Source of the DNA: Heteronotia binoei
Lineage: Eukaryota
Length of the DNA stretch: 64,000 bases
Reading direction: 5' to 3'
NCBI RefSeq assembly: GCF_032191835.1
Contig: NC_083235.1
Span: 61,814,001-61,878,000, forward strand
Part shown: positions 15,901 to 37,200 of the stretch, one piece after another
How the letters are laid out: every line of letters begins with the position of its first letter
Numbering within the stretch: position 1 is the first letter of the stretch
The notes under the pieces: model-generated
The model's input: the letters and a program-made list of their open reading frames with translations, nothing else
What the model was told of the DNA's origin: nothing
The model's database searches: none
Made by a program: the position numbers and the translations under genes

Positions 15901-18900
15901 GTGAGCCCTGCTACGAGCATCTCAACAAGTGAGTATTGGGGCTTGGCTACAACAACAACAACAACTTTTATTTGTATCCCGCCCTCCCCGCCGAAGCAGG
16001 CTCAGGGCGGCTAACAACATAATTCATACATTAATTAGACAAATGGAATAAAACTACATTTAACAATTTAATTAAAATTCTGATTAAATTTAAAACTAAT
16101 AAAAGTGCTAATAGGGAGCAATCTTGGTATAGAACTTGTGAGAAGAGTGACATGCTGGCATTCTTCTTTTGTGCTTATGTGTTATTGTGTAGTCCACCCT
16201 TCCTCAGAGAACATGGCTTATAACAAATCATCAAATGCCACAGTTTAGTTTATTTGATTTATATCCCGCCCTCCCCGCCGAAGCAGGCTCAGGCCGGCTC
16301 ACAAACACAATAGAATAACAATAAAAACGGTTAAATTAAATATTAAAATAAACAATTTAAAACAGTTTAAACAATTTGGTGCTAATTCCGTATGATTTAG
16401 GATGTTTAGGAGCTGTTGACCATTTTTCTCCCACACATCCCCACACAAGCGCCCTCTGCGTTCCCACCCGAAGACGTCGCCCTGGTTCAACCAGGGGCTG
16501 CGGCAACAAAAGCGGGGACTCAGAAGGCTAGAGAGGCAATGGCGGCGTACTCGAGACGAAGTGACCCGAACATCTTATAGAGAGAGTTTGAAGGCCTATG
16601 AGATGGCAATCAAAGCCGCAAAGAAAGCGTTCTTTGCGGCTAAGATTGCGTCCGCAACTTCGCGCCCGGCCCAATTGTTCGACATAATTAGAGGACTTAC
16701 AACACTGCCGCAAGGCAGACCAAATTCTATTGAATTGGAAATAGGCTGTGAGGCTTTTGCGAAATTTTTTGTGGATAAAATCGCGTCACTCCGCCCCGAC
16801 TCCTCTGCCAATTTTGAGACAGTTAGCGAACTCGAGGCTCCGAGCCTGTCTTCGGATTATATGCTGGATGACTTCGACCCCCTCAGCCTGGAGGAAGTTG
16901 ACAGGATCCTCTTAGCTGCTCGCCCAACTACCTGTAAATTGGACCCATGCCCTTCCTGGCTTATTAAATCTTGCCAGGGTGACCTTAGATATCCTATACG
17001 GGATATCATAAATAGATCCCTGAGGGAAGGGCACTTTCCAACGCCGCTCAAAGAGGCTGTGGTCCGTCCCCTCTTAAAGAAACCATCTTTAGACCCGGCC
17101 CAATTGGCACACTATCGGCCGGTCTCAAATTTGCCCTTTTTGGGCAAACTTATTGAGAGGGCAGTGGCGATGCAGCTGCAGACTTTCCTGGAGGATGCTT
17201 CCATCCTTGACCCATTTCAGTCCGGCTTTCGCCCGGGACATGGGACGGAGACGGTGCTGGTCGCCCTAGTGGATGACCTTCAACGGCATCTGGATCGGGG
17301 CGGCTCGGCGGTGCTGATGCTGTTAGACCTGTCGGCTGCGTTCGACACGGTCGACCATCGGCTACTGAAGGGTCGCCTCGCCGACGCAGGGATTCAGGGG
17401 TTGGCTTTACAGTGTCTTTCCTCTTTCCTTGAAGGTCGGGGACAAAGGGTCGCAGTTGGGGGGGAGCTGTCCCGGAGGTGCACACTTGACTGTGGTGTGC
17501 CCCAAGGGGCGGTTCTCTCCCCGATGTTATTTAACATCTATATGCGACCTCTTGCCCAGATTGCCCGAAGGTACGGGCTAGGGTGTCATCAGTATGCTGA
17601 TGACACCCAGCTCTATCTACTGATGGACGACCAGCCGACCTGCGTCCCGGAAAATCTAGATCGGGCACTATATGCCGTGGCTGAATGGCTCAGACTGAGC
17701 GGACTGAAGCTTAACCCTGCGAAGACAGAGGTCCTTTGCTTGGGTCGCCGCGGTCCGAAAAGGGGAATCCCCCTACCAGCCTTTGACGGTGCGCTGCTGA
17801 TAGCGGCGGACAGGGTCAGGAGCTTGGGGGTGCTTTTGGAGCCTTCCTTAAAGATGGAGGCTCAGATAGCAGCCGCTGCCAAGTCCGCGTTTTTTCATCT
17901 TAGGCGGGCAAGGCAGTTGGCCCCCTTTTTGGAGCGCGACGACCTAGCAACAGTGATCCATGCCACGGTCACCTCGAGGTTAGACTACTGTAATGCCCTC
18001 TACATGGGGCTGCCCCTGTCCCGAATTCGGAAATTGCAGCTGGTGCAGAATGCCGCGGCCCGGCTGTTATTGGGTCTCCCAAAGTGGGAACACATTCAGC
18101 CGGGTCTTCGGACCCTGCACTGGCTTCCAGTAATATACCGAGTCCGGTACAAGGTGCTGGTTATCACCTTTAAAGCCCTATATGGCTTGGGACCTGTCTA
18201 CCTGAAGGACCGCCTTTCCCCGCACGTTCCCCAGAGAGTACTGAGGTCGGGAACACAAAATCTCCTTACTATCCCTGGGCCGAAGGAAGCCCGTTTGAAA
18301 TCCACCAGAGAAAGGGCTTTCTCTGTTATGGCCCCTACATGGTGGAATCAGCTGCCGGAAGAGGTGAGGGCCCTGCGGGACCTTGTACAGTTCCGCAGGG
18401 CCTGTAAGACAACCCTCTTCCGGCTAGCCTATACCTAGCTTGAGAATTTTAATGTAACTTGCCGGATTTCTTTTATATACAGTTGAAATATTTATTATTA
18501 TTTATTGATAACCATGGTTTTATCTGTTTTTATCTGTTTTAAATGCTGATCCCTTTATATGTTTAAATACTGTAATTTTGTTGGATCTATCACTGGAAGC
18601 CGCCCTGAGCCACTTGTGGGAAGGGCGGGATATAAATCCCAAATAAATAAATAAAAATAAATAAATAAATGGTGGGATTAGGAAGCCAGCCGCTGTGCTC
18701 TGGTCACAACCTTGGTGCCCCTCCCCCCCCCTCTCTCCCTCCCATGCAGAAAAACAGAAGGGAAAGGAACTGGCACCACAGAGCTCCCCCCTGAGTACTT
18801 GACCAGCCCTCTTTCCCAGCAGTCTCAGGTAAGCACTTGGCTATGTCAGAGAGATAGGGGGTTCCTTGATGTACCAGTCAATTCCTCTTTCTGGTTTACA

Positions 18901-21900
18901 CTGATTACTGCCTGTTCTGGCCACAGCTGCCCCCAAAGCGTGATGAAACAGCACTGCAGGAGGAGGAGGAACTCCAGCTGGCAATTGCACTATCCCAGTC
19001 AGAAGCAGAGGAGAAGGAGAGGATGGTTTGTTTCGGGAGAACAGTGGGAGGATTCCATGGCATGATTGCTCTTGAATCTTTTTGGCTGCTTAGAACATTT
19101 CTGGGGCTGGGTATTGTGTCATGTTCTGTAAACTATGACCCATTGCTTGTAACTGACCCAGAAACCCAACTCAGAATTGGGACTGTGAAGTGGGGTGTTA
19201 AAATAATTTAAAAGTTATACTGGTTTTTACATGTGGTAGCCTAATTAAAAATAATAGACCATATGAAATCATGATGAACCAATTTCAGCTCTAATTGCAA
19301 ACTTGCCTGCCACATATTATATTGAGATGCAGAATAGTGTGGCTGCGGATATAATGAGGCCTGGCTGAATGCCCATACCCACTCCTTCCATGTTCCTGTC
19401 TAGCTGTGGCAGGCTGGGGATCAAAATCCAGTCCCATACTCTCTTGTGGTTTCCTCTTCAGAGGCAGAAAACTACATTTTCCACATACCCTAAGGCTGAG
19501 CCAACCCCTGTCACTTCATCTGCTCCTCCGGTCAATACCCTGTATTCCTCACCTGTGGTAAGTATCCACCTAACTGGCGAGATTCACCAGAAAGGAAATG
19601 TTTTTTATCTCCATAAGCTCCAAAAAGGATATTATAGCATTGGAGAAAGTTCAGAAAAGGGCAACTAGAATGATTAAAGGGCTGGAACACCTTCCTTATG
19701 AAGAAAGGTTGAAACGCTTAGGGCTCTTTAGCTTGGAGAAACGTCGACTGAGGGGTGACATGATGGAGGTTTACAAGATAATGCATGGGATGGAGAAAGT
19801 AGAGAAAGAAGTACTTTTCTCCCTTTCTCACAATACGAGAACTCGTGGGCATTCGATGAAATTGCTGAGCAGACAGGTTAAAACGGATAAAAGGAAGTAC
19901 TTCTTCACCCAAAGGGTGATTAACATGTGGAATTCACTGCCACAGGAGGTGGTGGCGGCCACAAGCATGGCCACCTTCAAGAGGGGGTTAGATAAAAATA
20001 TGGAGCAGAGGTCCATCANNNNNNNNNNNNNNNNNNNNNNNNNNNNNNNNNNNNNNNNNNNNNNNNNNNNNNNNNNNNNNNNNNNNNNNNNNNNNNNNNN
20101 NNNNNNNNNNNNNNNNNNNNNNNNNNNNNNNNNNNNNNNNNNNNNNNNNNNNNNNNNNNNNNNNNNNNNNNNNNNNNNNNNNNNNNNNNNNNNNAATTCT
20201 CCCTGCTATGGTTCAAACAGTTTTGCCATCACTCATAAAAATTCTGTGGTGCTTTGGCAAATCTTGTCTCAGGCCACTTAAAGGATGGGGGGGGGCGGTG
20301 TTCCCATTGCTTTCACCCCACAAGTGAAGCCAATCTGGCTTCCCATGCCTTCAGGTTCAGAAAAATAAATCGTGTTCTCTCCCATTGCCACTGTTTCTAA
20401 TGGCTCCTAATGAAGCAGGGGTGGGGGTGCTCTTGATTTTTGCAATTGTGATGAATTCCATGTGTGTCATTTCAGAATTCCTCTGCACCTCTGGCTGAGG
20501 ACATTGATCCAGAGGTAAGGTCCTAGCTCCCTAAACCATTTTGTAACTAGCCTTAGTGAAATGCCAACATCTCAGTTGTTTTCTGTTTCCCAATGCTTTC
20601 TGATAGTTGGCTCGTTACCTGAACCGCAATTACTGGGAAAAGAAGCAGGAGGAAGTCCGCAAGAGCCCCACTCCATCAGCCCCGCTGTCCATGGGAGAAC
20701 CAGCTGCCCAGACCACAGAGATCCAAACTGCTCCAATCACTGTGGTGGAAGTAAATATCAGCTTTCTCTCTTACTATATGAATGGATGTTGCTCAGTAAA
20801 GAGAAAGTAGTTCTGTCTGCTTCTTTTTTTGAAGTAGCGCCTCTTGTTTATTGTATCCCAAAATAGCTCCCAAAGTTTTAGACATACCAAGTCCATTGTT
20901 CTGTTCTTACAGGGGTAGGATTTCAGACTTTAAAGGAGACACGTCCACTGAACAGTCAAGGCAAGGGTGACATTGGCTAGGCAAAATCCACTTTGGAGAC
21001 GTTCTATACTAGAATGGCAGGCATAGTTGAACTAGGAACTGAGGCTTCCAGTTGATCATCTCCCATCTCTCCACAGCAGCAATATCAAAATGGTGAGACG
21101 GATGAGAGCCACGAGCAGTTTCTTAAGGCCCTCCAGAATGCTGTCACCACCTTTGTCAACCGCATGAAAAGCAACCACCTGCGGGGCCGGAGCATCACCA
21201 ACGACTCGGCAGTGCTCTCGCTCTTTCAGTCCATCAACAGCATGCATCCCCAGCTCCTGGAGCTGCTCAACCAGCTGGATGAGCGTCGCTGTATGTCACA
21301 GGGCCCCAGTTGACACTACAGGCGGGAGGGTTGTGGCAGGGCTGGGATCCTCTGTCTCTCCCCCTCCTCCTTGTAGAATCATGGGAGCAGCTTTCACGTG
21401 TGCTTCCAAGGGCAATGTCTAGTAATGTGGTTTTTTAGGTTTTGGATGGGGAGATAGTCCAAGGCCTTTGGCCTTTGCCAGCCTTTCTGTCTGTTCCTGT
21501 AACAGCTACAAATTTGTGGGCCCAAATTTGAACTTAAATCCTAAGGGAAATGTGGGTACACATGGGTCATGAATAGGAACTCTGACAGTGGTCTTCCCAT
21601 CAGTGTACTATGAGGGACTTCAGGATAAACTTGCTCAGATCCGGGATGCACGGGGAGCCCTGAACGCTCTGCGGGAGGAGCACAGAGAGAAGCTGCGCCG
21701 TGCTGCTGAAGAGGCGGAGCGTCAGCGGCAGATTCAGCTCGCCCAGAAGCTGGAGATCATGCGGCAGAAGAAACAGGTGAGGCTCATTGTCGGCGCATGC
21801 TCCGAGGAAAACTAGTGTCAAGATTGAGCTTGCCATTCCTCGTGACTGGTTGGCAAGTGGTGGTGCCTAGAAGAGCTTCTGAGACCAGAGGGCTGTGGTG

Positions 21901-24236
21901 GCTGATTCTGTGTGTCCTTTCCATCATGTATAGGAATACCTGGAGATGCAACGGCAGCTGGCCATCCAGCGCCTTCAGGAGCAAGAAAAGGAGCGCCAGT
22001 TACGGCTGGAGCAACAAAAGCAAACAATCCAGATGAGGGCACAGATGCCTGCTTTCTCTCTGCCTTATGCTCAGGTTTGAGAGGTGGAGAGGCCGGGGAT
22101 TACACTCTTCCCCTCCTTATTATACTGATGCAATAACGTGTGTGTGTGGGGGGGGGGAACTGCAGTGATTTAATGAAAACTGCAGTTTGGGTGGGATGTA
22201 TTGGACAGAGAATGGAAATTCTCCCAGATGTATCTTCTGCAAGCCATCTTGGGAACCCTTTCAGATCACATGGTGAGATAGAAATGAAGCAGCTGTGTTG
22301 GCGCCCCTCTAACACTGCTCAATATCACTTTTAGCTCCAGGCCATGCCTGCTGCTGGCGGGGTGATCTACCAGCCATCGGGCCCCACCAGCTTCCCAGGC
22401 ACTTTCAGCCCCGCAGGCTCCGTGGAAGGGTCTCCTATGCACACAGTGTACATGAGCCAGCCAGCCCAGGGCAACACCGGCCCCTACACTGCCATGCCTG
22501 TGGCAGGAACAGGTGAGACGGTTGGGAGGAAGTGCTATGCAAGTTCAACTAAAGCCTCTGAAACCTATGAACATATGAAGCTGCCTTATACTGAATCAGA
22601 CCCTCGGTCCATCAAAGTCAGTATTGTCTTCTCAGACTGGCAGCAGCTCTCCAGGGTCTCAAGCGGAGGTTTTTCACACCTATTTGCCTGGACCCTTTTT
22701 TGGAGATGCCGGGGATTGAACCTGGGACCTTCTGCTTCCCAAGCAGATGCTCTACCACTAAGCCACCATCCCTCCCTATGAACATATGAAGCTGCCTTAT
22801 ACTGAATCAGACCCTTGGTCCATCAAAGTCAGTATTGTCTTCTCAGACTGGCAGCGGCTCTCCAGGGTCTCAAGCGGAGGCTTTTCACACCTATTTGCCT
22901 GGACCCTTTTTTGGAGATGCTGGGGATTGAACCTGGGACCTTCTGCTTCCCAAGCAGATGCTCTACCACTGAGCCACCGTCCCTCTAGTAGAGCAGTTGT
23001 TGAGCCAACACCCCCCTCCCCAAGCTGTTCTTGTGTCACTCTATGCTCTTTTTTCAGATCCCAACATGGTGAACACCTACATGTACCCAGCAGGCACTAA
23101 TAGTGCTCAAACAGCTGCACAGGGGCAGGCTGTGCCCACCACTAATCCTGCCTATTCCTCTTACCAGCCTACACCAACGCAGGGCTATCAGGCAAGTTGG
23201 TTCACTTCTGCCCCAGAGCAGGAACGTATACCCCAGCACTGGGTAAGCTGTTGTGGAAGGCAATGGTGGGGTGGGGAGTGCTAACTTTGCTGGCTTTTGA
23301 GAAGCCAAAGATCCCACCCTGACGCATTGTCTGGCTTGTGAGTTAAGTCATGTCCACAGTGTCCTGGGAAATTGGAGTCACATGCCATTTCTCTGCTGCC
23401 CAGCTGCTGTGTGCACAGGGATTCCGCCTCCTTACCTATGCCTGTCTTCTCTACCGTGCAGAATGCAGCTGCCCCCTCACAGACCCAGGCTATCCCTGCC
23501 ATGACACAGGCTCCACAGTCTGGGGGCACAATTGGTTACATGGGCAGTCAGTCTGTCTCTATGGGCTACCAGCCCTACAACATGCAGGTAAGGAAGCACT
23601 TCGTATCGCTGTGGACATGAGGGTGACTGGCAAGAAGGGGTTAGGGGGTAAATTTCTTGCCAGGCTTGTACAGAGGCAAGGGGATCTCGCCTGGGATTAA
23701 AACTGGAGAGGGCTGGAGAGCGAGGAGTGTGGTGGGGGGAGTGCTTTTGTGCTGATGCCAGCTCTGCTTCTGCTCCCCTCTCTTCCCGACAGAACCTCAT
23801 GTCAACCCTCCCTGGTCAGGATCCCGCTTTGAGTAGTCTGCCACCCCAGCAGCCTTACCTATCAGGACAGCAGCCCATGTATCAGCAGGTTAGTCTGGAC
23901 ACTGAGGAAATGGCTCCTTACTCCATTCAGCCCTGCTGATTTCTGTTTTTGCTGCAGTCGCGTTAAGGGTGGGGTGCTCTGAATTTCTGTATAGTTCCTG
24001 TCCGCCAGCTCTGAGGGCTGAGAGATCGGGCAGGAACCCTTTGCTTACAGTGATTTTGTGTAGACCGGGAACGTTTATTGAGTGTGGCCTATTTGCTAAC
24101 CTTTGCGGTTGTCTCCTTGCAGATGGCACCCCCAGGAGGACCTCCCCAGCAGCAGCCCCCTCCCCAGCAGACTCCAGCCCAGGTGCAACAGGCACAGGGG
24201 GGCAGCGGAGAGGCTCAGCTAATTTCCTTTGACTAA
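3895..24236 (+). CDS. HGS: Hepatocyte growth factor-regulated tyrosine kinase substrate (Hrs, ESCRT-0; VHS-FYVE-UIM-coiled coil), 21 coding exons, 764 aa
   Basis: Exons: 3895-3931, 7551-7635, 8414-8489, 8688-8780, 10195-10318, 14981-15033, 15586-15654, 15804-15928, 18750-18828, 18927-19025, 19462-19557, 20476-20514, 20607-20750, 21077-21290, 21604-21776, 21934-22074, 22335-22512, 23058-23191 (GC donor), 23462-23587, 23793-23888, 24123-24236. Total 2295 nt, in frame. Starts MGRGGGTFERLLDKATSQLLLETDW, has FYVE RKHHCRACG and UIM EEEELQLAIALSQSE, ends with clathrin box LISFD*. Confidence 0.98.
10538..10712 (+). mobile_element. 5S rRNA-derived SINE
   Basis: GGAAGCTAAGCAGGG...AGTATTTGGATGGGA (5S internal control region) plus tail GGGTTGTCATAAGTCAGTTGCGACTTG. 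Confidence 0.7.
10716..13760 (-). mobile_element. Degenerate L1-like retroelement, about 2.1 kb after removing the nested MITE, HGS intron 5
   Basis: A charged, coiled-coil-like frame continues across the MITE TSD (EIPVMS|MESRKVGKDP); AT-rich 3' region ends like the 42737 L1 tail; internal 85-bp duplication. Boundaries are approximate and no TSD was found. Confidence 0.45.
12148..13037. mobile_element. hAT MITE family A, long (890 bp) variant nested in an older retroelement
   Basis: TAGGCTTCCCAA...TTGGCAACCCTA with TSD TTCCATAG (12140-12147 and 13038-13045). Confidence 0.93.
13921..14002. mobile_element. Tc1/mariner (Tc2-like) MITE right end
   Basis: CGTCTTATACGCCGGCAAATACGG followed by TA; internal inverted CCGGCGTATAAGACG. 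Left end not found. Confidence 0.5.
14166..14760. mobile_element. hAT (Charlie-like) MITE family B
   Basis: TIR CAGGGGTGTCAAAC / GTTTGACACCCCTG; TSD CTCTCGGC/CTCTAGGC. Confidence 0.92.
15949..16430 (-). mobile_element. Two adjacent short L2-type 3' ends
   Basis: Two copies of TCCCGCCCTCCCCGCCGAAGCAGGCTCAGG (near 15977 and 16264) with microsatellite tails; similar short ends near 9184-9240, 35460-35545 and 50290-50365. Confidence 0.7.
16441..18670 (+). mobile_element. 5'-truncated L2-clade LINE with an uninterrupted reverse-transcriptase frame, HGS intron 8
   Basis: Frame is open from about 16420 to TAG at 18436-18438. Motifs PWFNQGLR, YRPVSNLPFLGK, DPFQSGFR, LDLSAAFDTVDH, GVPQGAVLSPMLFNIY, YADDTQLYL. 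3' UTR ends GGGCGGGATATAAAT followed by (AAAT)n. No endonuclease domain seen. Confidence 0.95.
19612..20018 (+). mobile_element. CR1 LINE 3' fragment running into an assembly gap
   Basis: DIIALEKVQKRATRMIKGLEHLPYEERLKRLGLFSLEKRRLRGDM...WNSLPQEVV is a typical CR1 ORF2 C-terminus. Confidence 0.92.
20019..20194. other. Assembly gap (N run) in HGS intron 11
   Basis: Run of N directly after a CR1 3' fragment. Confidence 0.99.
22565..22985 (-). mobile_element. Tandem dimer (211-bp period) of a tRNA-head SINE with CR1-type tail, HGS intron 17
   Basis: Two near-identical units; minus-strand head TGGCTCAGTGGTAGAGC...GGTTCAATCCC, tail GGTCTGATTCAGTATAAGGCAGCTTCATATGTTC. Confidence 0.88.
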
Positions 24237-24970: not shown

Positions 24971-25186
24971 AATAAAGTATTTAAAACCTTTTCGGTCTGT
25001 GCTTTCTCGTGAGCTCTGTATGAAGTTTTAGTTCCGCCTGTCGAGAGAGGCGTTCGACAGAGCCAGCTGCCGTGATGTGTGACTGTGGCACTTCGCATGG
25101 GATATGAAAGAAGGAGCCCTTCGGCAAGTTTGGGCTGGGGGAGCAGTTCCCCCCAAACCATTAACAGAACCCCATCTGTGAATAAA
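24971..25186 (+). terminator. Candidate HGS polyadenylation signals
   Basis: AATAAA at 24971-24976 and 25181-25186; the second is followed by a GU/U-rich tract (TTTTTGTGTGTGTGTTT). Confidence 0.6.
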
Positions 25187-25214
25187 CAGCAGGAACATCC
25201 TTTTTGTGTGTGTG

Positions 25215-25220
25215 TTTAAT
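25215..25220 (-). terminator. Candidate polyadenylation signal (ATTAAA) of the METTL26-like gene
   Basis: Minus-strand ATTAAA about 60 nt after the stop codon, followed by a GU-rich GGATGTTCCTGCTGTTT. Confidence 0.5.
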
Positions 25221-25278
25221 TTTTTATATTCTTCCTGTAAATATTGTTATATTTTCTTCTGCTCCTGCTATCCAATAT

Positions 25279-28152
25279 CTAGCCAGATAACTGCCTCCGG
25301 CGAAAGATCAGGCATTTGGTATATTCAGGCATCTCCTCCTGAAGAAGAAAAATAACCTGTTCAGCTGTAGAAGAGGGGATTAGTGCAAGCAAGACAGGGG
25401 GGAAAAGCATCACAGAGACCATCAAGTACAAGGCATGGGGTTCTTTGCCGTTGTAGCGCATCGTTTCTGTGACAGTCTGGGCTGGCTTCTGCCTCTTACC
25501 ATCCGTTCAAGCCATAATGCATTGGTGTTGGCCATCTGACGAAGTTCCTCCACATCTCTCAGCCCCCACTCAGGGTTCCTGCCATTGAAAAAAGTACAGT
25601 GAGCAGAGCTTCCTTCCTTGAATCCAGTCCTTAGGCCTTATTCCTAAGGAGAGGGAAAACCAGACCTGATGGTTGAATAAATTCTCATTTTCTATCACCT
25701 CTGCTGTTATGTTACGAGTCGAATGTTTGGCTTCTAAACAACGAAACATTGCACGTAGTCTTTGCGCTCCCCTCCTGGCTGGTCTCGCTAGGGGTTTGGT
25801 GGTTCTAAAGAGGTAAGATCCAGTCCTTCAGCTCTAATTTACCTGGCTTGAAGCATTTTGTCTAGCTGCACGTTGCATTCTGGTAGGATGATCCCATTGG
25901 TGGCAAAAGGCTGTGGAGTGGAAACAATCAGAATTACGTCGGCTGCTACAGACAGGAGTGACCTGCGGTGTTCTTAGGCCAGTGGTGTAGTATGAAGGCA
26001 CGTCAAGATGAGGGCTAACTAACAGCTTTTGAAAATGGTTAAATTTCTTGACATTTGCAAGTGGAATTCAACTTTTCTGCCTTACTCCATGCTCCGGTGC
26101 CTCTGGGGTACAACCTGACCTGGATAGCCCGGGCAACCCAGATCTCAGAAGCTAAGCAGGGCCAACCCTGGCAAGTGCTTGAAGGGGAGACCTCCTTGGA
26201 ATACCAGGAGCAGAAGGCAGAGGAAGGCTGTATCAAGCCACTTCTCTGAACATCCTCCATGCCCCAGTAAGGGTTGCCAGAAGTTGCCATGACTTACACA
26301 TATGACTACAAGCCCCTCCCCCTGCAATGGCATTAAATGCAACGTGGGGCTCTACAATGATCGAATTAAACTGGACAGACCCATCGCCACTGGGAAGTAC
26401 CTTTTTGTATACAGATATAGACCACCAATTCTAGTCTCTTGGAATAGTGCTGAATCATACTGTTTCCTTGACAGTGGAATAGAAATGGCCTCCCTTGTTT
26501 TTGAGCAAGAAAGCTTGAAGTGATGTCAGTTTTTTAGATCTTTATAGGCACAGAAAATTCTGGATATTAAGTCCCTGAGGTGTTTTACTGGTTTAGTTTG
26601 TTATTGCTACATGCTCCCCCCCTCCTTTAACAACGCATGCAGATTATATACTTCTTGATATATAAATAAACGGTGTAGAAGGATCACTGGAAATAAATAC
26701 ATGGTTCAGAGCGACGGATTCTATTGTAACTGTTGGTAACGGATGTTTTTATAAGAAAGGTTTTCTATACTCACCCCATAGGCCAGGCAAATGCCTCCAG
26801 GTTTCAGTAGTTGTCCTATACCTTTAAACATCCCCTATAACATAAAACACGGAGTCAGAAAAAGCTCTGCCCTGTTCCTCTGATTCTAGGCAATCCACAG
26901 CGTCCCAATTAGTAACCCTGTCGAGAGGGTCAGTTCCCACCATTGTTTCCCACTTCCCCGTCGCACCTCCAGGCCTTGTTCAGTCACGTGTAGTAGATTG
27001 ATGATCACAACAAAGTCACAGCAGCCCTTCCCCAGGCCAGCCCACTCATTCCACGGCTGTAACACATCTATTGTCAGCGGTTCTCGGACATTGGTCACTT
27101 TGGTGGCATGGATGTAAGCACGGATGCTGTAGACAAATGCGAAAGTCATACATTTCTCTAGCATGCTGCTACCAAATGGTTTTTCCCAGTCTCCCAAAAA
27201 GGCTTCAGATACCGTAAGACAATATAATAGGATAGCAAGAATCCCTCCGATAGTGGGTTTTTGTCTTTTTTTTAACTTCCTTGTCCTACATTGACAGGAG
27301 TTGGGACTAGAAACATAAGTTGGTACTTACATTGGTTGGCTGTCTGAAAAAATCCTTATGGCTTGCCCCCAAATTAAAACCGACCATCGGTCCTTATTTC
27401 ACACTGAATGCAATATAGTCAATCTCCCTTTGTTCCTATATCACAAACTGCTGCTAATGGTTTGTATTCTAGTCTGACCCACAACACCCATGTTTTAACA
27501 GTATGCAGAACCGGACTAAATAGTCTTAGCGATACTAGGTATGGAAGCCCAAAGTGCATCTCCCTGAATTGCCCTCTGTGTTATGCTACAAGGAGGGCTC
27601 ATTCCTCTGGACATATAGCAACAGGCACCCCCTTCAACAACATACCACTTCCTTTTGCTTGCCCAAAAGATATGCCAAGTTGGACTCTAGTCATCACAGA
27701 ACAGAATGACCTAGCTGTTTTTCCAAGTCAGAACACCAGTATTTTACACAGTTCTTAATTTTTTTCTTTCTGCTCTGCTACAAACTGAGACCCAAAAGAG
27801 CCACCCCTCTCAGTTGCTACTCACCAGCGAGCTCTGAGACAGAACTAGGTAATAAAGAAAGTGAAGATTTTGTATTTAACACAATTCTATCTCATGGCAA
27901 TAAGGAAAAGGGTGAAAAGAGTCCATCCCTCTTGGCAGCACCAAGCCCCACAATGTACCTCTGTTGAGAAGCTGGACTGATTTCGGAAGGTTGCCAGGTC
28001 ACGCTGGGTAAAGCCTTGGCAAAGTGCACTATGTGCTGACCAGTCCCAGATCCTAGTTCCAGCCCAAAAGCTGAACTTGTTTCATCTACATAGTCAGCCA
28101 GAACCTCCAGGATAGGTTCTTTGTTCCTCTCTGCCACAGGAGAAACCAGCAT
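25279..28152 (-). CDS. METTL26-like (UPF0585/DUF938 family) class I SAM-dependent methyltransferase, 6 coding exons, 206 aa; probable paralog rather than ortholog of mammalian METTL26
   Basis: Exons 28152-27959, 27126-26967, 26834-26775, 25910-25843, 25578-25500, 25338-25279, all GT-AG, 621 nt with no internal stop. Protein: MLVSPVAERNKEPILEVLADYVDETSSAFGLELGSGTGQHIVHFAKALPSVTWQPSEISPASQQSIRAYIHATKVTNVREPLTIDVLQPWNEWAGLGKGCCDFVVIINLLHVTEQGLEGMFKGIGQLLKPGGICLAYGPFATNGIILPECNVQLDKMLQARNPEWGLRDVEELRQMANTNALWLERMEEMPEYTKCLIFRRRQLSG. Motifs AERNKxPIL, ELGSGTGQH, WQPS, YGP, NPEWGLRD and KCLIFR match the recalled METTL26 family. Confidence 0.92.
26113..26300 (+). mobile_element. 5S rRNA-derived SINE in METTL26-like intron 3
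   Basis: GATCTCAGAAGCTAAGCAGGG...GGGAGACC...GGAATACCAGG is 5S-like; tail GGGTTGCCAGAAGTTGCCATGACTT. Confidence 0.72.
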
Positions 28153-29327
28153 CTTGGCAACAGCTGCTGCAGGAGATGGGCCGCCTCCTATTCTGCCTGG
28201 GCTGCCGTCTACTTTCGGATGTCCTCCAGCCCTGCACAAATGGACTAAGCTAGATTTATTAAAGCAAAGGAGATTATGCTGAGATACTCTGGTCTGGAGA
28301 AGGCATGTGCTGTATCCGCAATTCAGACCCTTCCTGCTAACCACATTTATTCTCACGAGAGCATCCTACTATATTCTGATCAGCTGACTGTCGTCTTCCT
28401 ACTTCTGATGTAATAGGGTCATATACAAAAACTCATACCACAATAAAAGTTGTTGTTGGCCTTTAAATGCCACCTCAACTTTTTAAAATTCAATTTTCTG
28501 ATGTCTTTGGAATCTTGGCTGGGATTTCCCTAAAATGAAAAGACTCTGCAAATTCATAATTCTGTAATTATTTAATGTTGGGACTGGTATGGTATAGTGT
28601 ATGTCTCCACTGTCTATTGAAGAACAAGTGAAGGAAATTAGTAGGTTAAAAAAAAATCCCATTTTCTTTTGTCGCGAACTATCGCATTAAACATTTGAGC
28701 ACTTTCTGACTTGTTACAGTTGGAATCAATGAGCCGTGCCAATTAACAGGGAAAATTGAAAATGGCAACATTTTAAATGTATCCAAATTAAACCTAAAGA
28801 ATGTTATGTATTAGTGGTGCCATTGTATGCATTTTAGAATTGATACTTGACCTTAATAATTCAATCAGAAGAATGTATGCTAGGACTAAAAGATCAGGTT
28901 AATGTAATTACTTGCTTTATGGCTGTGCCATGTTGGTGTACCACACGGCACAACAAAGTCTGGCATATTATCGTATCGTTGATGAAGTCTGCAGGTGCTC
29001 ACTAAGGTCTCTGGTAAAGTGGGGCTAATCTCAGATATTCAACATTCCACAGAAGCTTTGTTGGGTTCCTGTGTGGTGTTTAAACTGCATCTCCCTCCCC
29101 ATTTATTTCTTATTAGCAGCTAATGCAGACCAAGCACAAGGTGATCCAAGCTTCTGGTTGTGGACCTAGTGGAAGAAATCCTTTGTTAAGGAGAAGGCAG
29201 ATCAGATCAGCCTATAAACAGAGCACTAGAAAGCTATTTCTGTCATCGGGCCGGATTAGACTGTAGCTAAAAAGGGCATCACTTATGTGCTCTGTACAGA
29301 TGCTAGCTTGCTCACAGTGCTAAACAC

Positions 29328-29837
29328 TAGGGTTGCCAATCCCCAGGTGGGGGCAGGGGATCCCCCAGTTTGGACACCCTCCCCTCCGCTTCAGGGTTGT
29401 CAGAGAACGGGGGGGGGGGGGAGGGAAATGTCTGCTGGGAACTCTGTTATTCCCTATGGAGATTTATTCCCATATAAAATCATGAATTGATCCGTGGGTA
29501 TCTGGGGCTCTGGAGGGGCTGTTTTTTGGGGTAGAGGGACCAAATTTTCAGTATAGCATCTAGTACCTCTCCCCAAAACACTCCCCAAGTTTAAAAAAGC
29601 TTGGACCAGGGGGTCCAATTCTATGAGCCCCAAAAGAAGGTGTCCCTTTCCCTCATTATTTCCTATGGAAGGAAGGAATTGAAAAGGTGTGCGGTCCCTT
29701 TAAATGTGATGGCCAGAACTCCCTTTGGAGCTCAGTTATGCTTGTCACAGCCTTGATCTTCTGGCTCCACCCCCAAAGTCTCCTTGCTCCACCCCCAAAG
29801 TCCCCAGGTATTTCTTGAATTGGACTTGGCAACCCTA
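29328..29837. mobile_element. hAT MITE family A
   Basis: Perfect 12-bp TIR TAGGGTTGCCAA; TSD CTAAACAC on both sides. Confidence 0.95.
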
Positions 29838-30934
29838 CTAAACACATCAAACATCAATAATCATAAAGGTCACCACTAACCTTGAACATGGACAAAAAAT
29901 CCTTTCAGAAAAATTTAATGTGGTTTCATTTCCTGAGAGTTTGCTAGGTGGCAACAGTAAGGCTGCGATCACACACACTAAAGAATGCACTTTCCAACTG
30001 GATTTTGCCAGTTCACACAGTAAAACCCAGCTGGAAAGTGCACTGAAAGTGGATTGAATTATTTGTGTGATTGCAGCCTTCTGAGGTGTAACAAATAATT
30101 TCCATGCACATTCAGTGTACTTTGAAGCACTGTTTTCAGGGCAACAAAACCACCTACACCACACTTACAGCGTCTTCATTTCAGATGCAGTCCAATCCTG
30201 TGAATGTTTTAAAAGCTATTTGACTCAAAAATTAGCCCCACTGAATCCCAAGAGATTTGTTCCCAAATAAATGGTCATAGGATTGCAGCTCCCGAGGACA
30301 TTAAAAAATCTTACAAGTTGATGCATTTTCCTCTTATGCCTGGATGGTTTCACGACTAGGGAACTCTGCTGAGCAGGATTTCAACATAAAACTAAATAAA
30401 GCAGGAGTATTTTGTTTCAGCAAAAGCTTCCATGGCTCAGGGCTCACTTCATCAGATGTTTACACTAGGATAAATGTAAGTCTTTAAGGCACCACCAGAC
30501 AACTGTTTTATATTGCTGCTACAGACAAGTACTACTCTTGTGGAATTCACATGCAGGTACATAACCCAGCAGACAACCCATGAAGAGCTCAGTATGTTTC
30601 AAGAATACATGCAGATTTTCTCCACTCTGTAAGATTCATGTACTTTCTTCTCACAAAACACAACCATCCTATCAACCCAACCCTTGTCTATTTCCCATTA
30701 CTAACATTATTTCTCTTGTTGCGAACCCCAGTGCCAGCTGCTCAGGCAACAAGTTATTTAGTTATTTGGTTAGTGCCAGCGATTAAACCATAGAGCCAGG
30801 GGAACTGGCTGGGAATGAACCCAACTGAATAGTTCTGAGTAGACCAGAGTTTATTCTAAAATCCCCCCCATTGCACAAGAAGACAGTGCTAGCATAAAAT
30901 CTGCAATCCTGTGAGCGCTGGCTAATTAAAAAAA

Positions 30935-31660
30935 ACTGGCTAATTACTAGGAAACAGAGAGTGAGCATAAATGGGCAATTTTCTCAGTGGAGGATGGTAA
31001 GCAGTGGGGTCCATACTGGGTCTGATGCTTTTTAACTTGTTCATTAATAATTTGGAGTTGGGAGTAAGGAATGAAGTGGCTAAGTTTGCGGATGACACTA
31101 AATTGTTCAGGGTGGTGAGCAGTGTTCCATCTAAGCCATGGAGTCTTGTGAGTAAAAATTCTTCTTTGTAAGCTGCTGGCATTAAAGTTGTGTGCTACTG
31201 CATAAATTAATTTTCTCTAGGGCTATTTTTCCTGAGCAAAGACAAAAATGTGTGAGCCGGAGACCAAAAATCTGTGAGCTAGGTCATGCTAACTCAGCTT
31301 AGAGGGAACACTGGTGGTGAGAACCAGAGGGGATTGTGAGGCACTCCAAAGGGATCTGTCGAGGCTGGGTGAGTTGGCATCAACATGGCAAATAAGGTTC
31401 AACCTGGCCAAGTGCAAAGTAATGCACATCAGGCCAAAAATCTTAACTATAAATACAAGTTGATGGGGTATGAACTGGCAGAGACTGACCAAGAGAGAGA
31501 TCTTGGGGTCATGGTTGATAACTCACTGAAAATGTCGAGACAGTGTGCGATTGCAATAAAAAAGGCCAACGCCATGCTGGGAATTATTAGGAAGGGAACT
31601 GAAAACAAATCAGCCAGTATCGTAATGTCCCTGTACAAATGATGGTGTGGTCTCATTCGG
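30935..31660 (+). mobile_element. Degenerate CR1 RT fragment, interrupted by MITE C
   Basis: RKQRVSINGQFSQW, KFADDTKLFRVV and ERDLGVMVDNSLKMSRQCAIAIKKANAMLGII remnants. Confidence 0.88.
31120..31313. mobile_element. hAT MITE family C (194 bp) nested in a CR1 RT fragment
   Basis: TIR CAGTGTTCCATCTAAG / CTTAGAGGGAACACTG; TSD GTGGTGAG. Confidence 0.9.
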
Positions 31661-32881
31661 AATATGAAGCTCACTGATGAAGCTCACAAGACGTCGCATT
31701 TGATCAGTTTTCTTGCAGCTGAGTTTCGTAAGTGCTTATATTGACTGACTCATCAGTACAAGTGTCACAGTGATGTCCATAAACAGTAACAGTCTTTGTT
31801 GAGTCAGTAAATTAATACCTCTATTTCTATCATAATATGCTGTCACTGAGTAAATGGGATCCAAGGGTATCAAAGCTTCTATGGATAAGTAGACAAGAGC
31901 ACAAAATGAAAGATATGAAGCAAAAGGGCTGGTGTGGTTTAAAGGAATTTTCTAAGAGGATGGCACGCAACATTGCTCATCTCACCAAGTCCCAGGAGGT
32001 GATAATCCAATTCATCATGAAAGAAAGGAAATTTTGACATGGCATAATGAGGGGGGTTTCTTTGCTGCATTTGTATTGCTATGTAACTCTAGCATGTATA
32101 AATTACTTTTGACTAGAGTCAAGTAGTTGATCCCAATTATGTACCATTATTATGGTACGTAATAGTTGATCCCAATTATGTACCATTAAGAAGTTAAGTA
32201 AAGTTATGACTGAATTTTCTATTTCTTTATCTTTGTTCTCTCCACCTGTTTTATAATCTTGTTCCTTTTTAAAGCTCATATTGCCAACTGAACAAAAAAT
32301 GATTTCCTACTGCACATTTTTTTTTTCGTATTGCTCATAATGTGTCCTCCTGTATGTTAGAATGGTTAAGATTGCTCTCTAGAGCATCATCCAGTTTGCC
32401 ATTTGATTTAGAATCTTAAATTTCACGCTTTCTGAAATGCCGTGCATCTACATGAGACAGCGGAGCACGAGGCGTCTACATTCAGCGCAGCGCTACCTTT
32501 GGGTTTGGAGCGAAAACTGAGGCGGCGATGGGAACGAAGGTTTAACTAATCTGGCATCCTGCGTACTTTCGAAAAGGCAAAACAGCTACCAGTAGGAAAC
32601 GATCAGAAACGCAACTTCCATTGTCAAAGCACAGTTTTGACTGTCGTACAGAAGGACAGCTTCGAAGTATCAGATGCTTATAAATTATAATTAAGCTATA
32701 ATATTCTATAATACAGTACTGCTTTGTAGGGTTGTCATAGACTAACTCCGCATCAAGCCACTCTCCCCTTCGGTGCTTTGGGAATAATTCCAGACTGCAG
32801 TTAGGTTGTATGCCACTTTCAGCCCCGCCACCCATACACAAGACCCCCGCAGTATAGGGATGGTAACAGAGCTTATGTGTC

Positions 32882-33377
32882 TAGGCTTCCCAATCCCCAG
32901 GTCCCAGCGGGGGATCCCCTGGTTTTACAGACTTCCCCCCTCCCCCAGCCAGCTGGCTGGTGGGGGAAGCCCCCTCCCCCACAGCCATCATGCACCTCCA
33001 TGAACGATTCCCATAGAGAATGATGGGGAATTGATCCATGGGCATCGGGGGCTCTGGAGGGGGGCTGTTTTTTGAGGTAGAGGTGCCAAATTTTCAGTAT
33101 AGCATCTAGTACCTCTCCCCAAAATACCTTCCAAGTTTCAAAAGGATTGGACCAGGGGGTCCAATTCTATGAGCCCCAAAAGAAGGTGCCCCTATCCATT
33201 ATTTCCTATGGAAGGAAGGCATTTAAAAAGGTGTGCTGTCCCTTTAAATGTGATGGCCAGAACTCCCTTGGAGTTCAATTATGCTTGTTACACCCTTGTT
33301 CCTGGCTCCGCCCCAATGTCTCCTGGCTCCACCCCCAAAGTCCCCAGATATTTCTTGATTTGGACTTGGCAACCCTA
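32882..33377. mobile_element. hAT MITE family A upstream of MRPL12
   Basis: TAGGCTTCCCAA...TTGGCAACCCTA; TSD TATGTGTC/TATGTGTG (7 of 8). Confidence 0.93.
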
Positions 33378-33539
33378 TATGTGTGTATTTTTAAATCGAA
33401 TAAAAGCCACATATTTTGCTGAGAAATAAGAGCAGAGAGCGCAGACTTCTGCCATTGTTTCTGGCTACTGAGGGAACAAAAGACAATCAATTCTATATTT
33501 AAGTACTGCATTCCTCCCCTCCCGCATAAACAATTGCCA

Positions 33540-34230
33540 CTCTCAACCCCGGAAGTATGCAAAAGTACAGCACCAAAAGCAACCTAGAAAAAAAAAATAA
33601 TCACATCCAAACAATGGCCATGTCGGTCTAGGACTTGGAAATTTAAATCTATGGATTCAGCCCTCGGTCAAACCCACCGCCGCAAAGTTCCAAGGCTCGA
33701 GACGTCACGTCCGTCAAGACCGGCGCCGCGACGGTTATCGGCGGTGATTGGACGGCTTCGAGAAACCACCGAGATGCTACGGCTAGAGCGCTCTCTTGGC
33801 GCCCGCGGCGGCTCGCATGCTTGAGAGAGACTGGAGGCCGCCGGTGTCTCCTTCGTGCCGCCTCTTGCAGCTCCCGCCATGGCCATGTTGCCCACGGGGC
33901 GGCTAGGGATTGCAATCCGCCTTCTCCTGCGGTATGAGGAGCGGGAGGGAAGGGGGGACGTTGCGGGGCGCAAAGACCCAAAGGAGGGCTAGAGGTCACC
34001 CTGGTTGGGGATCCTCTCGTGAGCCATAGGCCGAGCGAAATCCCCACAACCCGTGCAGTGTTATCGCAGGAGCGCCCATCTCCGCGGTGGTTTGGGCGGT
34101 AGCATCCTATGGAAGAGCAGTGGTTTGGCCAAGCTCCAGGACAGCGTACTGTGCTTGACTTCGGGAAATCCCTGCGGGCTGAGGAATTGTCGCTGAGATG
34201 CTCGAGGCGATGCTTGCCTTTTCTGAGGCA
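33540..34230. promoter_or_regulatory. CpG-island promoter of MRPL12
   Basis: CpG-dense around exon 1; CCGGAAGT 33549-33556, CRE-like ACGTCACGT near 33702, ATTGG near 33746. Confidence 0.8.
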
Positions 34231-37200
34231 CGCGTGGCCTTCTGATTTGCTTTTAGTAAAAAAGCACCTCTGCGTATTGTTTTAGTATTCGAAAAATTTG
34301 TATGTATGGCTAGCTCTTATATTTCAAAGTGGGAGGTAGTTGTGGAAAGGTAGGTGCATGGTTAGCGCCACCTACTAATTTCATGGCTAAAGTGACCTTT
34401 CCGTTGGAAACTTCCTGGTCATGCCTCACAAATGCTGTTTCAGGAATTAGCAGAGGAGTGAATGTAGTCTACTGGTTAGCCAATGAGCAGTTTCTGATGG
34501 ACTACCTAAGCCCTTCTGTTTGTTGGGGGTGGTGTAAAAAAAAGGCAGTGTTGCACATTTTAAAATTTAATTTATACCGTGCTTTTTTCTACAATGAGGA
34601 CCCAAAATGGCTTACAACATTCTTCCTTTCTCCATTCTGATCCAACAGCTCTGCGGGGTAGATTAGTCTGAGTGTATAACTGGCCCAAGATCACTGAGCA
34701 AGTTTCCACAAGAGAGTGTGGATTTGACTGTTATTGTCCTAGTCTCTCTAACCCAGGGGTGCCAAGCGTGCAGCCCAAGGGCCAAATCGGCCCCTGGAGG
34801 GCTCTTATCAGGCCTGCGAGCAACTCACTGGCATCTGCTTTCTCTCTCGCTTTTTTCTGCATCACTGCTCGCTATGCCAGGCTTGCCCAATCACACAGGA
34901 GCTACACAGCAACGTCTCTGTTTTCTCCATTGGCTGACCAGCACATGAAGCGACACGTACAAAAGCTTGCAATATCCAGCCATTTCATGTTTTCCCCTGG
35001 GTCTTCGGCTCAAAGCATTGACCATGAGATTTCTGTAATGAATGTCAGTAAATCAAAAGTAGGTTTGCAACTTACAGATATACACCTGAGCAACACCTGA
35101 ATAGGATACTCAAGATTGCTGCAGCGCAGACGTTGCTAGATTTTGATGCAGTAATTCAGAACTAAATAAACAAAATAAACAAAATATTGCAAAAGTGCTA
35201 ATCTTTTAAGCATGTTTTATTTTTAAGGGTTTTTTTTTTAAAAAAACCCTTTAATTGTGTTTGTCTGTGTCCTCTATAATGTTTACATCTCCGCTACCTG
35301 GCATTACAATCTATGACACACATGGCCCGGCCCAACAAGGTCTCATTTATGTCAGATCCGGCCCTCATAACAAATGAGTTCAACACCCCCTGCTCTAACC
35401 GTTGGACCTGACTGGTTCTGCTAGAATTTGCTCTGATCCAGGGTACTTCTTTGCTCTTAAATTTATGTTATTTTATTTATATCCCATCCTCCCCACCGAA
35501 GCAGGCTCAGGGCGGCTTACAGCATAAAAGCACTACAGTTAAAACAATACATATTGCTGGACTATCCTAAGGAGTGTGTGCTTATGTTCAGCTTACACGG
35601 TCATTGTACCTACCATTGAGAGATCTCAACTGTCTACTTTTGCTTTGCATTTTTAAAATGTATAGGTGGAGGTGGAGTACAGTAAAAAAAAAAAGCACTT
35701 AATGCAATGCATGAATGAAGTCATTCCTCCTCTCTTTGTCATCACATTCTCATTCTTTACTTCCTTTTGTGACCAGGACAACATATATGATTCTATCCCC
35801 CATTTGGCTACCCCCTAACACTTCATTGAGTGTTTATCCCAGTGTGTATCTACTAGCGTGAAGCAAATCCCTATCTGCCTCATGCTAGGATAGTTTCTAG
35901 CCATCTAAAAATGCCTTCTAGTTCTATGTGGGTAATTTGTCAAACTGGATGTTAAAACTGCAGCCTTACCTCTCTTGGGAGTTGAATCCCCTGCTCCTTC
36001 GATAACATTTGCTGTTACTTATGTTGTCCAAAGGTGAGAGGCCTGTCCTGGTTCAGTGTTTCCCCTTAAGGCAGTAGTCTATGGCCATCTGAACTTGTAT
36101 GTATTTGCTGCACAAATATTTTTGTCTTGGGATGTGTAATGCTCCATTTTTCCCCGTTTGTGTAGGCAGCATCAACCACGAGCCTGTGCTGTAAGGATGC
36201 TGAAGACTACATGCTCCTGGCAAAGTGGAGCCTTGGCCAACCCTCCTCTGGACAATGCTCCCAAAGAATACTCACCCAAGATTCATCAGCTAGTTCAGGA
36301 TATTGCTAGCTTGACGCTGCTGGAGATCTCTGACCTCAATGAGCTGTTGAAGGTACAGTATTTGCGCACTGAGCAGAGTAGCTTCCTTACCAAGGAAAGA
36401 CAATATACATAGAGAGCAGAGGCAGGAAGGGCACAGTTCACACTATTGATTTGTAAGAAGGGGGGGGGGGTATATAGGTGGGGGGTGGGGGGTGGGGTGC
36501 AGTGGCTTTCCCGGCTTCTTGGGTATAAGGAACACATGAAGAATGGTCTGTTCATATTTCCTATGCCTTCTTTTTCAGAAAACCTTGAAGATACAAGATA
36601 TGGGACTCATGCCAATGGCAGGGATGATGCCATCAGCGCAACCTGCAGCTCCGGTAAGGGACCAGCCTTGTAACTTGCCATTCCCTTGGGCTGAATAGCA
36701 ATTACCTCAGGCCAGTAACTTGCATTTAATCCACCAAAGGAACATGCCAGAAGTGTATTTGGCTTGAAATTTGCCTGCATACCCCACAGCACTGTATTGT
36801 ATAAACACAGTGCTATGACAACTGCTCATTGACCCTACAGGAGGAAGCAGCAGAGCCAAAGATGCTCATTGTTTCCTAGTGATTAACACAGACAGTAGCA
36901 AGTGAGTTTTTTTATGGGAGAAGTGGAGCTAAAGTGATGGCAGTGTTAGGGACAGATGATTCTCCCTCCACCCTCAAGCTAACATGATGGCCCAGAAAAA
37001 ATCATGGTGGAAAAAACACGTTTTTTCCTCTTGTGAGGCCTTTTATTCAGTTTTTCCAATGGAAAATGGGGAACTTCTGGACAGCACTGCCAACACCCTT
37101 CTGTTAAATATTTTCTCTTTTAGATTAAACAAAATGCTTCTTAAGGCAAGGTTTTTTACACTAATAATGTATAGCTTGAAAAAGCCTAAAGACTCTATCA

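Follow-up and report, generated by a model that had tools for sequence, protein, structure and literature searches.

Which gene lies between HGS and MRPL12 in Bynoe's gecko, Heteronotia binoei? We analyzed a 64,000-nucleotide stretch of this genome (NC_083235.1; hereafter the window), in which positions 28152-25279 of the minus strand encode a protein resembling the methyltransferase METTL26. Such a gene could be METTL26 itself, moved to a new place, a decaying relic or a second gene with a history of its own. An earlier note on this DNA, written from the letters alone, had favored the last and proposed an ancient paralog of METTL26 that was lost from mammals. We find that the gene is the H. 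binoei ortholog of METTL26B (zebrafish zgc:103625, Swiss-Prot Q66I74). Taken as a whole, we hold with high confidence that it is an intact, expressed and constrained sister of METTL26 that predates the jawed-vertebrate ancestor, occupies a fixed position between MRPL12 and HGS, and is predicted to be a methyltransferase of the DUF938 family.

An intact six-exon gene annotated as METTL26B

Reading out the minus strand and assembling the gene by script gave six exons between 28152 and 25279, with GT and AG at the ends of all five introns, and the same exon set was recovered independently by exact splice mapping to the public contig. The spliced frame has 621 nt, 206 codons followed by a TAG stop, with no internal stop. 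Exon 1 (27959-28152, minus strand as are all six; 194 nt) opens with the ATG at 28152-28150, encodes residues 1-64 and ends two bases into codon 65; the S-adenosylmethionine (SAM)-binding motif I, LELGSGTG, lies in it at residues 31-38. Exon 2 (26967-27126; 160 nt) is entered in phase 2 and encodes residues 65-118, among them IINLLH (106-111), and exon 3 (26775-26834; 60 nt; phase 0) encodes residues 119-138. Exon 4 (25843-25910; 68 nt) is followed by exon 5 (25500-25578; 79 nt), which holds the family-wide NPEWGLRD motif, and by exon 6 (25279-25338; 60 nt), whose 57 coding nucleotides encode EEMPEYTKCLIFRRRQLSG ahead of the TAG stop at 25281-25279. EEMPEYTK occupies residues 188-195. In the list of open reading frames (ORFs), the gene is visible as fragments only. 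The structure described in the earlier note, six GT-AG exons giving a stop-free 206-aa protein with motif I, both quoted peptides and nothing but fragments in the ORF track, therefore stands as it was given.

The spliced protein is identical, letter for letter, to the NCBI protein 'methyltransferase-like 26 B [Heteronotia binoei]' (P0001), found in a search seeded with exon 1, and its locus lies at about 61.83-61.85 Mb of the public contig CM063337.1. METTL26B is already known as a gene: RefSeq annotates the window gene under this name, and the zebrafish ortholog Q66I74 is a reviewed entry in Swiss-Prot. The gene itself, annotated in one database and curated in the other, adds nothing new and is no discovery. 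The A/B names do not go back to duplicates in Xenopus laevis: Swiss-Prot has one METTL26 per Xenopus species, and the B name is zebrafish's. A literature search for the paralog under the names mettl26b, zgc 103625, methyltransferase-like 26 B and C16orf13 homolog B found no paper, and a paper on the evolution of the METTL family treats METTL26 as one single gene.

Within the METTL26B orthogroup, the window gene belongs to the same clade as the other members and is the annotated member for the H. binoei genome. Its protein is 50-59% identical to those of fishes and 75-92% identical to those of reptiles, its predicted structure matches that of zebrafish METTL26B with a template-modeling (TM) score of 0.96, and it shares six exons and its neighbors with other METTL26B genes; we see no difference of kind. 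Amniote members as a group stand on a long stem branch (0.36-0.42 substitutions per site) and carry R at position 168 (GLRD), as opposed to P in the fish-dominated B set.

METTL26 and METTL26B form separate, ancient clades

The H. binoei assembly also contains METTL26 proper, a 203-aa protein (P0156) encoded on a different chromosome record, CM063344.1. Both genes are likewise present in Paroedura, Elgaria, Anolis, Salvator, Latimeria (coelacanth), Chanos (milkfish) and Alosa (shad). A maximum-likelihood tree of 51 proteins with bacterial outgroups (tree 1) separated two clades. The window gene falls in clade B (support 100/99) together with proteins from chimaera, ray-finned fishes, coelacanth, lungfish, turtle and squamates; clade A (91/86) unites proteins from sharks, skate, fishes, coelacanth, amphibians, birds, mammals and reptiles. 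When amphioxus, a mollusc and a mite served as outgroups (tree 2), both clades were recovered again (A, 97/90; B, 100/99), and lampreys fell outside A+B (91/80). The window protein nests among gecko B proteins, and its candidate membership in METTL26 proper, the clade with mammalian METTL26, was rejected when imposed as a constraint (approximately unbiased (AU) test, p = 2.1e-13; log-likelihood difference 210). Because cartilaginous and bony fishes occur in both clades, the A/B duplication is older than the jawed-vertebrate ancestor. The trees support METTL26B as an ancient paralog of METTL26, both descending from one ancestral gene. The ancient paralogy proposed in the earlier note thus gained support from each of the checks made on it: a well-supported separate clade, the rejected grouping with mammalian METTL26, and a second, true METTL26 elsewhere in the assembly.

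METTL26 (C16orf13; human Q96S19; H. binoei P0156) shares with METTL26B its DUF938 domain, length, fold, and intron positions and phases. The two are, however, 46-48% identical, have been in separate clades since before the jawed-vertebrate radiation, and lie on different chromosomes in H. binoei. Their neighbors differ as well: FAM195 and a WFIKKN-type gene for METTL26, as seen in Paroedura and Elgaria, and MRPL12 and HGS for METTL26B. All vertebrate classes retain METTL26, but not all retain METTL26B.

We determined exon lengths by exact splice mapping of database proteins onto their own loci. Exons 1 to 6 measure 194/160/60/68/79/60-63 nt in reptile B genes, 200/163/60/68/79/48 nt in milkfish B, 197/160-163/60/68/79/48 nt in gecko and Elgaria A, and 260/163/60/68/79/57 nt in milkfish A, with identical intron positions and phases in METTL26 and METTL26B. 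The agreement with METTL26 in exon boundaries and phases that the earlier note pointed out holds against H. binoei's own METTL26. Five introns at conserved positions mean that METTL26B is not a retrocopy.

Some annotated B models end differently. The Elgaria model (260 aa; locus L007, 14287-14587) runs through the exon 5 donor and bypasses the conserved last exon, and the Anolis isoform X1 (P0004) has a C-terminus unrelated to those of other B proteins. These deviant ends are either annotation artifacts or real alternative 3' ends lacking the conserved MPxxxKCLxFR tail.

METTL26B is constrained, and its ortholog is spliced in a related gecko

We estimated pairwise ratios of nonsynonymous to synonymous substitution (dN/dS) by the method of Nei and Gojobori (NG86). 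For METTL26B, dN/dS was 0.21 between Heteronotia and Paroedura, 0.21 between Heteronotia and Gekko, 0.26 between Paroedura and Gekko, and 0.11 between Heteronotia and Elgaria; the gecko-turtle value, about 0.10, is rough because dS is saturated (>1). The corresponding lizard pairs gave 0.19 and 0.15 for METTL26. No METTL26B value (0.10-0.26) is near 1, which the earlier note had named, coupled with a lack of expression, as refuting its proposal, and as judged from these ratios METTL26B is as constrained as METTL26.

For expression, we turned to a related gecko and aligned its data, two RNA sequencing (RNA-seq) runs and two transcript assemblies, to this stretch, where the reads were 90-95% identical. 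Apart from a repeat treated below, these reads cover the six METTL26B exons only, at moderate depth. Four splice joints fall at the predicted sites (27126|27959, 26834|26967, 25910|26775 and 25578|25843). The fifth was reported at 25336|25498, two bases off the predicted 25338|25500, with an equal skipped length of 161 nt. This shift arises because the relative has a Val codon in place of Glu at the exon 5/6 junction, so that two intron bases fit equally well. The reads encode that Val and a C-terminus ending in SEC, both as in the Gekko protein P0003. The METTL26B ortholog is transcribed and spliced in this gecko, with all five joints seen, as the earlier note had expected of junction reads. 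No RNA runs of H. binoei were listed in a whole-gene search, and a search with exon 1 gave only runs of relatives and DNA or capture-type contigs.

Intron 3 contains a repeat (26016-26387; core 26102-26215, plus strand) on which reads from all four of these data sets pile up to very high depth, about 2000x at most when contig depths are summed. Its similarity to 5S rRNA (Rfam RF00001; 21.6 bits, E = 0.05) stays under the gathering score, and it is probably a copy of a 5S-derived short interspersed element (SINE).

METTL26B is found in fishes and reptiles

METTL26B was found in chimaera, ray-finned fishes, coelacanth, lungfish, turtles, tuatara and squamates. In a search of 5.8 billion proteins, every match above the lungfish protein (59% identity) came from squamates, turtles or tuatara, and an exhaustive HMMER search of cluster representatives yielded B-like representatives from chimaera, turtles and fishes. 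Among annotated proteins, none from mammals, birds, crocodilians or amphibians was B-like; all their proteins fell in clade A. For human, mouse, rat, cow, X. laevis and X. tropicalis alike, Swiss-Prot lists a single METTL26. GC-rich regions are often missing from bird assemblies. This distribution suggests at least three losses of METTL26B within tetrapods. The loss from mammals that had been claimed earlier is thus matched by the annotated mammalian proteins, but as a statement about mammals alone it was too narrow. A paralog kept in fishes and reptiles and lost in mammals is a common pattern.

METTL26B is predicted to be a SAM-dependent methyltransferase

The full protein matches DUF938 (Pfam PF06080) from profile position 3 to 202 of 202, with 203.6 bits (E = 3.7e-60; cut-off 27). 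Single exons carry part of this signal: exon 1 alone matches the profile with E = 6.8e-18, exon 2 alone covers profile positions 65-113, and exon 5 alone covers 163-188. An AlphaFold2 model built from an alignment of 84 family members, in which G36, G38 and H40 are invariant, has a predicted local distance difference test score (pLDDT) of 96 and a predicted TM score (pTM) of 0.91, and shows an alternating strand/helix, Rossmann-like core. Among Swiss-Prot models, its best match was zebrafish METTL26B, followed by METTL26 of zebrafish, human, rodents, cow and Xenopus and by Drosophila CG18661. From profile and model, we infer that METTL26B is a single-domain class I (seven-beta-strand, Rossmann-like) SAM-dependent methyltransferase of the DUF938 family. 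SAM binding would rest on motif I (E32-x-G-S-G-x-G-Q-H40) and on the acidic residue that follows strand 2 (WQPSE57), and the methyl group would pass from SAM to a substrate.

A sequence search of solved structures with METTL26B gave no match. By Foldseek, the nearest solved chains are SAM-dependent small-molecule methyltransferases with 12-19% identity, among them 2o57 (a putative sarcosine/dimethylglycine N-methyltransferase), DnrK (1tw3), NovO (5mgz), CouO (5m58) and MitM (8zc7). They share the class I Rossmann-like core with METTL26B (E about 1e-11 to 1e-12; query-relative TM 0.7-0.8), but METTL26B does without their extra dimerization or substrate-lid domains, and the likeness is one of shared fold, not of shared substrate. 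By analogy with these fold neighbors, a small molecule or a short peptide end is a more likely substrate than nucleic acid.

We compared conservation between 114 A and 84 B proteins. At 53 positions, residues are conserved in at least 90% of both clades, and the window protein deviates at none of them. Motif I, WQPS, INxxH, YGP, NPxWGL and the C-terminal KCLxFR are among these positions. Four positions (94, 154, 168 and 189) are fixed differently between the clades; at position 168, reptile B proteins read as clade A. Because METTL26B keeps all residues conserved across both paralogs, METTL26-like chemistry is probable, and the two may differ in substrate preference or expression.

MRPL12 and HGS flank METTL26B from geckos to elephant shark

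Both neighbors named in the earlier note were confirmed by their domain content. HGS, tail-to-tail with METTL26B, is represented by its 3' part (15279-24236, plus strand; 764-aa product with VHS, FYVE and Hrs_helical domains; the gene begins farther upstream), and its coding end, at about 24236, lies about 1.0 kb from the METTL26B stop codon. MRPL12, head-to-head with METTL26B, was followed from 33879 to 38152 on the plus strand (189-aa product with Ribosomal_L12_N and Ribosomal_L12 domains). The second of these positions is only the end of the fetched locus, and MRPL12 extends past it, with ORFs encoding MRPL12-like peptides up to about 39900.

With loci fetched together with 10-kb flanks, we compared the surroundings of METTL26B in three geckos (Heteronotia binoei, Gekko kuhli and Paroedura picta), an anguid lizard (Elgaria multicarinata), a turtle (Emys orbicularis), a teleost (Chanos chanos) and the elephant shark (Callorhinchus milii). 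In all seven, a clade B gene lies between divergent MRPL12 and convergent HGS in the same order and orientation, so the linkage to both neighbors anticipated in the earlier note reaches from geckos to elephant shark. Beyond MRPL12 there is a mitochondrial-carrier gene (SLC25A10 by position) wherever the fetched locus reached far enough.

The distance between the coding starts of METTL26B and MRPL12 varies among these species. It is about 0.75 kb in Emys, 0.87 kb in Chanos and 1.6 kb in Callorhinchus. Geckos have longer spacers, 5.7 kb in Heteronotia (28152 to 33879) and at least about 8 kb in both Gekko and Paroedura. A compact bidirectional METTL26B/MRPL12 promoter seems to be ancestral and to have expanded with repeats in geckos. 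The H. binoei spacer (28153-33878) carries reverse-transcriptase-like ORF fragments at about 31004-31642.

At the opposite end of METTL26B, a plus-strand AATAAA at 25181-25186 is likely the HGS poly(A) signal. It lies less than 100 bp from the METTL26B stop codon, which means that the 3' ends of these convergent genes nearly abut or overlap. Transcript ends near 25181-25281 were not visible in the related gecko's reads, which are too diverged there.

Elsewhere in the window, Rfam and ARAGORN agreed on two tRNA-Pro(GGG)-like elements within the HGS range (22701-22773 and 22912-22984, both minus strand, 211 bp apart) and on a tRNA-Thr(GGT)-like element at 57742-57814 (minus strand). Because their anticodons are unusual for vertebrate tRNA genes, these three may be tRNA-derived SINE heads rather than genes.

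Alternative explanations and the origin of the pair

If the window gene were simply this genome's METTL26, translocated, no second paralog would be needed. We give that reading next to no credence: it has only general family likeness in its favor (47-48% identity to METTL26 proteins), and it is contradicted by the separate P0156 in the same assembly, by the support for clade B together with the AU test, and by an MRPL12-HGS position common back to elephant shark. A decaying or non-functional relic, or a retrocopy whose frame is still open, is also very improbable. Three facts lean toward it, namely that several tetrapod lineages yielded no copy of the gene, which is therefore dispensable in some contexts, that the amniote B stem branch is long, and that the RNA comes from a relative, with none from H. 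binoei. But the conserved introns rule out a retrocopy, dN/dS equals that of METTL26, the frame is intact in seven species from cartilaginous to bony jawed vertebrates, the ortholog yields spliced transcripts in a related gecko, and every family-wide conserved residue is kept.

For METTL26B as an intact, expressed and constrained sister of METTL26, several points weigh on the other side. The expression evidence is that of a related gecko, not of H. binoei; absence from other lineages was read from protein databases, not from genome searches; the lamprey placement has moderate support only; in the literature, we found no enzyme assay for any DUF938 protein; and papers up to October 2026 call METTL26 uncharacterized in function and substrate. 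Two further points concern an origin by whole-genome duplication: within the fetched 10-kb flanks, we found no paralogous pairs among the neighbors of A and B, and in milkfish METTL26 (11.05 Mb) and METTL26B (16.69 Mb) lie 5.6 Mb apart on one chromosome, LR697118.1.

These last two points are also what a small-scale duplication in the jawed-vertebrate stem, either segmental or tandem with later dispersal, would have in its favor. In Paroedura and Elgaria, the A copy has a FAM195 gene on one side and a WAP/Ig/Kunitz/NTR (WFIKKN-type) gene on the other, a setting that corresponds to that of human METTL26 at 16p13.3 (WFIKKN1, METTL26, MCRIP2), with MCRIP2 as the adjoining FAM195 gene. Neither flank is a paralog of the B neighbors MRPL12, HGS and the mitochondrial carrier, and tblastx of the window found no FAM195- or WFIKKN-like exons, only short, two-strand, repeat-like matches. 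Against this, the timing seen in tree 2, after the lamprey split and before the split of cartilaginous and bony fishes, fits the second vertebrate round of genome duplication. Human 16p13.3 and 17q25.3 are also rich in paralog pairs (RAB40C/RAB40B, METRN/METRNL, MCRIP2/MCRIP1, ARHGDIG/ARHGDIA, PDIA2/P4HB and CIAO3/NARF), and one shared chromosome in a single teleost can stem from later fusions. A small-scale duplication is, on balance, unlikely, and we consider it probable that METTL26 and METTL26B arose through whole-genome duplication early in vertebrate history.

What METTL26B may mean for the METTL26 family

The fixed synteny of METTL26B and its pattern of loss would be new to the literature as a short evolutionary note, though databases imply both. 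Few human METTL proteins are as poorly understood as METTL26, and a sister gene that has stayed in one position since before the split of cartilaginous and bony fishes offers comparative leverage on it: positions that both paralogs conserve mark their common catalytic core, and the four clade-specific switches are candidates for specificity. Zebrafish carries both genes. A further, doubtful extension is that METTL26B is a second-round ohnolog with its own substrate or regulation, and that tetrapods later lost it on at least three independent occasions, in amphibians, mammals and archosaurs. One possibility for such regulation would be co-regulation with the mitochondrial ribosomal gene MRPL12 through a shared head-to-head promoter. 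If METTL26B did have such an origin and a role of its own, reptiles and fishes would be the only models for the ancestral two-enzyme system.

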